Positions 22,101 to 23,981 of a stretch of 64,000 nucleotides of DNA are shown in pieces. The stretch's first letter is position 1. The number at the start of each line of letters is the position of its first letter. The notes below the pieces were generated by a model. It was not told where the DNA came from, made no database searches, and saw nothing but the letters and a program-made list of their open reading frames with translations. The translations under genes were made by a program, and so were the position numbers. This DNA comes from Ministeria vibrans ATCC 50519 (taxonomy: Eukaryota; Protista; Filasterea): contig CALSCP010001443.1 in assembly GCA_943704425.1 (NCBI GenBank), positions 12,044-76,043 on the forward strand. Reading direction: 5' to 3'.

Positions 22101-23981
22101 CTCGTCGCTCTCCTTGTCAACCGCCAGAAGTTCCGTCGTCATCCGATCCTTCCCTTCTACATCCTCCTCTTCGTCGTCGTCGTGTCCAGCAAGAAGACTC
22201 GCCAGGCGCAACTCGTCCAGTGGAACAGTCTCAAACACACCCGCTCCCGCATTGTAGACCATTCGCAGTTTGTGCATGCGAGTGGCAATGGAGCGGTCTT
22301 CCTCGTCCGGCAACTCTTCTCCACGCAGTGCAGCCACCAGAGCCGTCTTGCCTGCCTCGGTCGCACCCAAGAACAGCACTTTGATCGACCGACACTTTAC
22401 TGAGCCACGTTTCATCGCAGCAGAGAATGCAAGGTCGTACGAAAGAGCACTGCAAAAGAGAACCGAGTGAATCCAAGAAGAAACGAAACCGTTGTGAATA
22501 TTCGTACGCCACCAGTTCTGAGATGGACCATTCCGTGCGAGTGCCGTCTTCTGCGTGCGCGACAAGATGCTCACCGGAGAGCTCAATCTTGACGGGACTA
22601 TGCACGTTTCAAATAATGAGTAACAAGTCAGAGGTGCAAGTGGGAAGGTAAGTGTACCAGCCAGTCGTTGGAAGTGTCTTGACTTTGGTTCCTTTTGCAG
22701 TGCTCCACACTTTGATTGTGCCATCATATGAGCAACTGAAAATGGTATTTCCATCACGAGACACACACACTCGACGAACCCAGCTGAAACACAATCCACT
22801 CAGTTAATTCAACTCGTTTCGACATTCACTTACTCCTCATGACCCGCAAAAGTGCGCACACTCTTTCCCGTTTGCACATTCCACACTTTCACTGTTTTGT
22901 CCCGCGAGCAGCCGATCACAAGTGACTCATCAGGTGAGAACACTGCTGCCATGACCACACTAAACCAAACCCGTACAGTCAGTTCCATTCTCACGCTGCG
23001 CATTCTCTTACTCTGAATGACCAGTCAGTGTTTTCGTGCACTCTCCACTTTCAGTTGACCACAGTTTGATAGTGTTGTCCCACGAAGCACTGAGAATCGT
23101 CTTTCCATCAAGTGAAAATCGCACAGACGTAATTCCCCTACAAAACACGATTCCATTTCCAATTCCATTCCCATTCACTCTCTTTCTCTTACCGTGTGTG
23201 TCCCTCAAATGTCTTTTCGCACACTTTCCTCTCAATGTCCCACAATTTCACAGTATTGTCCCGTGAGCCACTCAGTGCTTTCGTTCCATCCGGTGAGAAT
23301 TGGACATCTAACACAGCACTACACCAAAAGAGAATTCAATTCAAACTCAGTCGCAATATCAATCGTACCTTTTGTGTCCCTCAAACGTGAATTCACAGTG
23401 TTCTCCTTCAATGTCCCACAGTTTTACTGTGTTGTCCCGTGAGCCACTCAGTGCCTTGTTGCCATTGGGAGAGAACACTCCACTGAACACAAAACTACAC
23501 AAAGAATGATAAACACAAACACAATTGCAATTTGCATTTCTCTTACTCTGAGTGACCTGTGAGTGTCTTATTGCATGCTCCACTCCCAACGTCCCACACC
23601 TTAAGCGTCTTGTCGTAAGACGCACTGAGAAGACGCGTTCCATCAGGAGAGAAGTTGACACTTTCAATATAACTACGAATGGACAGTTTGAGTTGTGATT
23701 GTGATCGGATTGACTTACTGTGTGTGTCCACTCAGACTCCGCACAAACGAGTAGTCTCTAGCATCCCACACAGTGATGTCACGGCTCATTCCTGCACTGG
23801 CCAGCCACTGTTCGTTAGGGCTCAGTGTAAGACCAAAGATCTGATTGGTTCTTCCACTCCAAGAGAATAACGGGAAATCAAACGAGTCTGACCCACTGCT
23901 GCTGCGGTTAAACAGGCCAACCCCACTCGTTCCCGCCTCCGCGTACGCCCATAGCGACTCGTTGATCTTCACAGATCTCAT
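19190..23981 (-). CDS. WD40(x7)-Roc GTPase-COR-like-peptidase C14 (caspase/metacaspase-fold) fusion; ROCO-family protein
   Basis: Eleven exons join in frame through GT-AG introns: 23719-23981, 23547-23672, 23369-23494, 23193-23318, 23012-23137, 22834-22959, 22658-22783, 22490-22597, 21848-22449, 20107-21783, 19190-20049. Roc motifs are [24 protein letters not shown]...[10 protein letters not shown] and [10 protein letters not shown]14 motifs are [14 protein letters not shown] and VIADFCNSG. Confidence 0.85.

Follow-up and report, generated by a model that had tools for sequence, protein, structure and literature searches.

A one-blade-per-exon WD40 cassette in a Roc-COR-caspase gene family of Ministeria vibrans, with diversity concentrated at predicted binding-face codons

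The genome assembly of the filasterean Ministeria vibrans ATCC 50519 (GCA_943704425.1) contains, on contig CALSCP010001443.1, a gene that joins a WD40 array, a Roc-like GTPase, a COR-like region and a caspase-like domain, and that lies within the 64,000-nucleotide window analyzed here (positions 12,044 to 76,043 of the contig). The gene occupies positions 19190-23981 of the window on the minus strand and comprises 11 exons with 4245 coding bases, or 1415 codons (Table 1). Six consecutive exons, 2 to 7, are each exactly 126 nucleotides (nt) long, with AG before and GT after, and each encodes a single WD40 repeat. This one-blade-per-exon layout is real and far above chance; as set out below, it is an old and constitutively spliced arrangement, and the diversity of the family is found in a handful of codons around the introns.

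Each 126-nt exon is open in frame +1 only, with one base ending a split codon and two bases starting the next, and is therefore flanked by phase 2 introns on both sides. The introns between the six exons are 52, 50, 55, 52 and 50 nt long and follow the GT-AG rule. Because exon 1 also ends in phase 2, two codons past a GH motif, six introns part seven blades, and each of them cuts the loop that connects strand d of one blade to strand a of the next on the top face, in the second codon past GH. An exon runs from just past one GH to the next GH and covers one structural blade, strands a to d; blade 7 ends without the motif. All seven blade units match the Pfam WD40 family PF00400 (27.2-40.6 bits where the cut-off is 27; E 5e-6 to 3e-10). 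Equal length, shared phase and one repeat apiece, six in a row, rule out chance as an explanation. Introns 9 and 10 are in phase 1, and the phase 2 introns number eight of ten since the 90-nt exon 8 is likewise phase 2-2.

Splicing of this array is supported by transcripts. All ten introns are confirmed by joints in contigs from four RNA-type public runs, those holding the gene stretch being marine or algal-culture samples. Several junctions show a few different letters between their two sides, which come from transcripts of paralogues with other codons at their exon ends. Among the 15 of 25 RNA joints listed, none skips a whole exon, and each removes exactly one intron of 48-64 nt. An earlier annotation of the window made from its letters, hereafter the sequence-only reading, had described six phase-2-flanked exons of 126 nt with one WD40 repeat each, placed all six introns in the second codon past GH, and reasoned that skipping, duplicating or swapping any exon would leave the reading frame intact. 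Coordinates, Pfam matches and RNA joints agree with that description, exon 1 included, and the arithmetic of 126 nt in phase 2-2 holds; the exon skipping that it had proposed to look for is absent from the joints listed.

Table 1. Exons of the WD40-Roc-COR-caspase gene and the introns discussed in the text (window positions; joints are splice joints in RNA-type contigs).
Feature	Position	Strand	Content	Basis
Exon 1	23719..23981	-	263 nt; translation start at 23981; N-terminal stretch specific to the family, with WD40 blade 1	ORF and frame; Pfam WD40 27.2 bits; RNA joint 23672/23721; contig X18 record 21
Exon 2	23547..23672	-	126 nt; blade 2 (strands a-b-c-d); phase 2-2	PF00400 E 3.1e-10; joints 23494/23547, 23672/23721
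Exon 3	23369..23494	-	126 nt; blade 3; phase 2-2	PF00400 E 8.1e-8; RNA joints
Exon 4	23193..23318	-	126 nt; blade 4; phase 2-2	PF00400 E 4.1e-10; RNA joints
Exon 5	23012..23137	-	126 nt; blade 5; phase 2-2	PF00400 E 1e-9; joint 22959/23012
Exon 6	22834..22959	-	126 nt; blade 6; phase 2-2	PF00400 E 4.7e-8; RNA joints
Exon 7	22658..22783	-	126 nt; blade 7; phase 2-2	PF00400 E 1.3e-7; joints 22781/22834, 22597/22658
Exon 8	22508..22597	-	90 nt; phase 2-2	RNA joints
Exon 9	21848..22449	-	N-terminal half of Roc GTPase	Motifs read directly; RNA joints
Exon 10	20107..21783	-	Remaining Roc (G4-like THID) and COR-like region	
Exon 11	19190..20049	-	C-terminal caspase-like domain and stop codon	Joint 20049/20107
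Six blade-separating introns	23673-23718, 23495-23546, 23319-23368, 23138-23192, 22960-23011, 22784-22833	-	Phase 2	
Intron after DFAG	21784-21847	-	Phase 1	

Exons 1 to 7 are predicted to encode a seven-bladed WD40 propeller that would form the N-terminal sensor of the protein. Counted from the sequence, the array has seven full blades, followed by an eighth exon of 30 residues. Exon 8 has no Pfam match, and its equivalent in the paralogous locus L035 matches a blade profile (E 7e-4); exon 8 could be a partial and degenerate eighth blade with strands a-c, or else a segment that closes the propeller. Positions 3-41 of a blade exon align without gaps to residues 91-129 of WDR5, so that codon 3 falls on Ser91 and codon 19 on Asp107, both of them residues of the central top-face pocket of WDR5; a single exon also aligns without gaps to 2YMU. 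A published pattern rule predicts three top-face hotspots of WD40 blades, R1-2, R1 and D-1 (PMC3419727), and the pattern phi-V/I-phi-x-V at the start of the exons and S-phi-D in their middle fit this rule. By these alignments, exon codons 1, 3 and 19 would correspond to R1-2, R1 and D-1. The introns sit amid the patch of codons that proves hypervariable between paralogues, with codon 41 and the split codon upstream and codons 1 and 3 downstream.

The remainder of the gene, searched exon by exon with Pfam and related tools, resembles a Roc-COR switch with a protease-like output. Exon 9 opens with a GxxxxGKT P-loop, continues through an insertion of about 100 residues rich in acidic residues, proline and serine, and ends on DFAG; the Pfam Roc match (E 0.0037, 17.9 bits) lies under the cut-off of 27, and G1, G3 and G4-like motifs are readable. 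One RNA-type contig (run X16) carries a three-base insertion, TCG, within the Roc insertion at window position 22170, and probably represents a paralogue or a strain variant. The open reading frame (ORF) that covers the COR-like region (20072-21829, minus strand, 586 residues) matches no Pfam family, COR included, and an Atlas feature search groups it with COR-A/Roc clusters (score 0.96). Exon 11 matches Peptidase_C14 (E 2.6e-10, 40.8 bits). Pfam finds no NACHT or NB-ARC domain in the gene, the centre of which is the Roc-like P-loop and the COR-like region.

The gene belongs to a sizeable family. The paralogue search suggested by the sequence-only reading was productive: across the assembly (29.7 Mb, 2860 contigs), a search with the COR-like ORF brings up at least 40 paralogous loci, with about 16 arrays of four or more blades and about 20 WD40-bearing paralogues. 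At the DNA level, the cassette has a full-length copy of 95% identity on contig C1080 (locus L002), one of 86% on C1507 and copies of 73-78% on C2659, C1887, C1564, C1799 and C2424, together with some 35 tiny contigs (113-850 nt) at 91-100% identity. Exon 6 alone exists in at least 12 distinct versions. The C1080 copy is not an allele of the window gene, a possibility ruled out because homology stops about 300-400 nt past the gene; it is a gene-sized duplicate with unrelated flanks. Gaps of about 1.2 kb, filled with N, stand exactly at the expected cassette sites of two close paralogues, L022 (C985, 5400-6605) and L023 (near 98 kb on C1441, 2248-3399). The tiny contigs, whose ends fall on hypervariable codons, are evidently fragments of gapped cassettes of this kind that the assembly left unresolved. 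Outside the assembly the COR-like region is rare, with 8 matches in 5.8 billion clustered proteins and 5 in 1.84 billion representatives, all of them metagenome fragments, and in public data the family seems restricted to this lineage. One further locus, L021 (C1441:50000-59000, minus strand), has a Roc-COR region 95% identical to that of the window gene without the WD40 cassette. An open frame of 606 residues located 5' of the L021 Roc exon bears a second caspase-like signature (AGHG ... DACHA), which points to replacement of the sensor domain within the family.

Does the exon layout serve as a shuffling device? We built a hidden Markov model (HMM) of the blade from the six cassette exons and scanned all fetched loci with it. 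With the exon-boundary search restricted to multiples of three, the non-redundant paralogous loci contain 102 complete WD exons, of which 84 are exactly 126 nt long and the remainder measure 120-132 nt. The layout extends to paralogues with a COR region of no more than about 60% identity (C2154, C1344, C2206 and C883). Blades 2-3-4-5-6-7 are colinear in L003, L009, L018, L025, L027, L028, L035 and L039, each paralogue blade has its most similar counterpart at the matching position in the window gene, and complete arrays constantly hold seven blades and the short eighth exon. In no fetched locus did we find a repeat number or order that differs between paralogues, so the repeat shuffling foreseen by the sequence-only reading was not borne out. 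Blades of the window gene are 17-71% identical to one another in amino acids, so repeats have not recently been exchanged within the gene; the closest pair, blades 3 and 4 (71%), is also close in distant paralogues, and its similarity is therefore old. The readable long introns, in L027, L028 and L034, hold no orphan exons; what they contain is AT-rich sequence, a run of (ATA)n or a coding blade that has diverged. In L028 (C2424, minus strand, 2709-3081), an (ATA)n microsatellite enclosing an assembly gap has lengthened one cassette intron to 373 nt.

Other WD40 genes are built differently. HIRA (48722-51520, plus strand) and the WD40 ORF at 11674-12912 (minus strand) each carry several blades inside single open frames. 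The sequence-only reading had said that HIRA and striatin in the window do not have the layout; this stands for both frames, the second being a putative striatin. In a WD40-ankyrin-kinase gene elsewhere in the assembly (L060, C2017:45000-52500, plus strand), the WD40 repeats are likewise contiguous in one ORF of about 1060-1090 residues. Since none of these three genes is split, the division by blade is specific to the present family. The L060 locus itself consists of the WD40 array, then ankyrin repeats, among them an LRRK2-ANK match, and then a protein kinase ORF. Seven lone blade-like matches lie on contigs in which no Roc-COR paralogue was detected (C1243:7150-7233, C1758:4690-4800, C2271:3096-3215, C524:10800-10913, C1670:133674-133793, C281:60062-60184 and C1943:14400-14513), and may be orphan WD40 exons or parts of other WD40 genes. 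Colinear order, fixed number and the sharing of the layout with distant paralogues together indicate that it is ancestral and static, and we conclude that it is an old, fixed and constitutively spliced arrangement, not an active shuffling device.

The diversity of the family resides at the level of codons. In per-blade alignments of close copies, all of them paralogues within one assembly, variation peaks at exon codons 1, 3 and 19, and is lower at codons 21, 41 and the split codon. By pairwise counts, the proportion of nonsynonymous differences (pN) reaches 0.45 at the first three and is 0.020 over all remaining codons; the background proportion of synonymous differences (pS) is 0.080, and intron diversity between close copies is 0.075. 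The minimum numbers of nonsynonymous and synonymous events are 51:4 at 18 hot codons and 51:42 at the other 228 (Fisher p 5e-7). Between the window gene (L001) and its C1080 paralogue, 33 of 108 hot-codon bases differ, compared with 12 of 648 in the rest of the exons and 1 of 259 in introns. L009, L010 and L014, an independent subfamily on three large contigs, give 59 of 180, 30 of 1080 and 6 of 354 for the same three classes, and because they repeat the pattern, it does not depend on the small contigs. Codons 1, 3 and 19 with their neighbours thus differ at 31-33% of nucleotides, the other exon positions at 2-3% and the introns at 0.4-1.7%. The elevated change at propeller surface positions to which the sequence-only reading had pointed is present, and the alignments support viewing the cassette as a diversifying sensor with a very strong signature of diversification at its predicted ligand-facing positions, a pattern shared with immune receptors. 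That reading had gone further and taken the layout as a diversification mechanism for ligand recognition: the part that concerns a variable sensor holds, whereas the layout itself, colinear and fixed, does not appear to be the mechanism.

Taken together, these observations are best explained by an ancestral, fixed, one-blade-per-exon propeller sensor that is diversified at its contact codons by selection while the rest is homogenized, a reading to which we assign a probability of about 0.7. A single origin of the layout is most likely, through an exon-plus-intron unit that was amplified in tandem ahead of the family's expansion; the layout would then have been inherited unchanged by the roughly 20 WD40-bearing paralogues and spliced constitutively. 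Diversifying selection would keep the top-face codons 1, 3 and 19, along with 21, 41 and the split codon, different between paralogues, and gene conversion between paralogues, as in concerted evolution, probably keeps the remaining exon sequence and the introns near-identical. The propeller would act as a ligand sensor that, on binding, governs both the Roc switch and the caspase-like domain, and the family would amount to a repertoire of ligand-specific sensors switching a Roc GTPase and a caspase-like protease, with a putative role in immunity or cell death.

Several points weigh against this reading. The choice between seven and eight blades and the mapping of the surface rest on sequence alignment, and pN and pS obtained from pairwise counts are crude measures. 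Many cassette copies lie on the tiny contigs or in N gaps, which leaves the copy number uncertain and means that some of the mosaicism, including the four-gamete failures considered below, could be assembly chimerism. The RNA evidence consists of assembled contigs, which lose rare isoforms, and of the 15 joints listed among 25, so that infrequent exon skipping may have escaped it. The origin from a tandem unit is drawn from position and phase only, and the mutual similarity of the cassette introns, by which a shared ancestry would show, is weak, with a mean local score of 12.4 that lies above the 10.5 +/- 0.5 of shuffles but not clearly above the 11.7 of unrelated introns.

Why, then, keep near-identical introns between the blades? 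One answer is that they serve as homology anchors, such that gene conversion swaps single blade exons between corresponding sites in some 20 paralogues; top-face residues would then be reassorted combinatorially, and the layout would be part of the diversification after all. The introns are indeed conserved as much as, or more than, silent exon sites; hot-codon motifs reassort among copies, as when one codon 1-5 motif occurs with differing D-1 codons; and the four-gamete test fails for 89 of 153 pairs of non-hot informative sites in six copies. However, the breakpoints cannot be placed relative to the introns, and the variable patch straddles the intron, so that a breakpoint there would split one binding loop. 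The small contigs may be chimeric, and gene conversion needs no introns, fungal nwd repeats doing the same without them (PMC4986451). We regard such exchange as unlikely, and the stronger proposal, that the layout has been kept because its near-identical introns anchor germline combinatorial exchange of blades among these receptor genes, as slightly less likely still. Much less probable is diversification through isoforms, in which in-frame skipping or mutually exclusive use of 126-nt exons would yield several receptors per gene. The cassette exons are symmetric, so the frame survives skipping, and alternative splicing has been reported for the LRR exons of brown-algal ROCO genes (PMC11378527), but no joint among those listed from the four runs removes the roughly 230 nt that a skipped exon would entail, and blade number is constant across paralogues. 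By what is understood of WD40 structure, removing one blade would leave a six-bladed propeller, which probably would not close.

The last two alternatives concern the variation itself. Could the variants be alleles, strain mixtures or misassemblies of one or two loci? The 35 or so tiny contigs, and the gaps on C985 and C1441 exactly at the cassette sites, invite the suspicion, yet large contigs that differ in their flanks carry at least nine arrays (C1443, C1080, C2659, C1887, C1564, C2424, C2154, C1344 and C1441), and the contrast between hot codons and the rest recurs among three of these, the large-contig subfamily described above. We consider an artefact of this kind highly improbable, and give even less credence to a dedicated mechanism that mutates the hot codons in place of selection on ordinary mutations. 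A divergence at hot codons 20-80 times that of the adjacent introns would be extreme for selection alone; nonetheless, the substitutions there comprise all 12 types with no base bias, neither a template repeat nor a reverse transcriptase is seen beside the gene, and homogenization of all but the selected sites explains the pattern equally well. The lack of base bias also rules out adenine-specific mutagenesis of the kind performed by diversity-generating retroelements.

The selected, fixed-propeller reading places the family beside several known systems. In Ectocarpus, LRR-ROCO genes encode one leucine-rich repeat (LRR) per exon of 72 nt in phase 2, and the exons of NB-ARC-TPR genes, which carry tetratricopeptide repeats (TPRs), are 126 nt long; the LRR domains of paralogues cannot be aligned with one another, and orphan exons occur (PMC3341825, PMC11378527). 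The Ministeria genes share with these brown-algal families, known in Ectocarpus and Saccharina, the features of candidate receptors with one fixed-length repeat per exon in the same phase on both sides, multiple and clustered copies, and diversifying selection at the ligand-facing residues of the repeat exons, and they share with LRR-ROCO a candidate receptor built on a Roc-COR-like core. By contrast, the Ministeria exons encode WD40 blades, and a caspase-like protease provides the output. Their repeats vary in neither number nor order between paralogues, and the fetched loci showed no orphan or reversed exons; a closed propeller constrains the number of repeats in a way that an LRR or TPR solenoid does not. 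The fungal nwd genes HET-E, HET-D and HET-R carry WD40 repeats that are about 85% identical within a gene, variable in number and free of introns between them (PMC4986451). As in these NACHT-WD40 proteins, the present family combines 42-residue WD40 repeats, hypervariable and apparently positively selected top-face positions, probable concerted evolution and a link to a death-effector domain; unlike them, it has within-gene blade identities of 17-71%, a fixed blade number, one exon per blade, and a Roc-COR GTPase in place of a NACHT ATPase as its switch.

Two further comparisons concern the parts of the protein. The blades align without gaps to WDR5, and the codons variable here coincide exactly with the three top-face contact positions that the hotspot rule defines; WDR5 itself, unlike the window gene family, is a conserved scaffold protein, single-copy and not hypervariable. 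LRRK2 and the Dictyostelium Rocos resemble the window gene, with its Roc-COR-like core, in joining such a core and a WD40 propeller in one chain. LRRK2 carries its WD40 domain at the C terminus and has a kinase as output, whereas here the WD40 array is N-terminal, the output is caspase-like, and the COR-like region is highly divergent, as its 5-8 public matches indicate. Elsewhere in the window lie an open frame with five or more EGF or calcium-binding EGF domains (61047-61937, plus strand), a cNMP-binding ORF (43933-44748) and a JmjC/cupin ORF (52419-53276).

Cassettes with one repeat per exon have been proposed before, from the LRR and TPR solenoids of brown algae, as a way to diversify receptors, and here the same grammar is applied to a closed WD40 propeller. 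What is new is a WD40 blade-per-exon cassette on a Roc-COR switch with a caspase-like output, in a different marine eukaryote. The analysis also separates two ideas that are usually merged, in that the symmetric exons appear as a frozen scaffold and the diversification takes place at the level of codons; exon symmetry alone should not be read as shuffling, and the main interest of the cassette lies in the extreme and structurally precise hypervariability that flanks its introns rather than in that symmetry. With about 30% divergence at the predicted contact positions against 0.4-3% elsewhere, the cassette offers a testable map of a putative ligand-binding surface, for what may be a family of non-NLR receptors in immunity or cell death.

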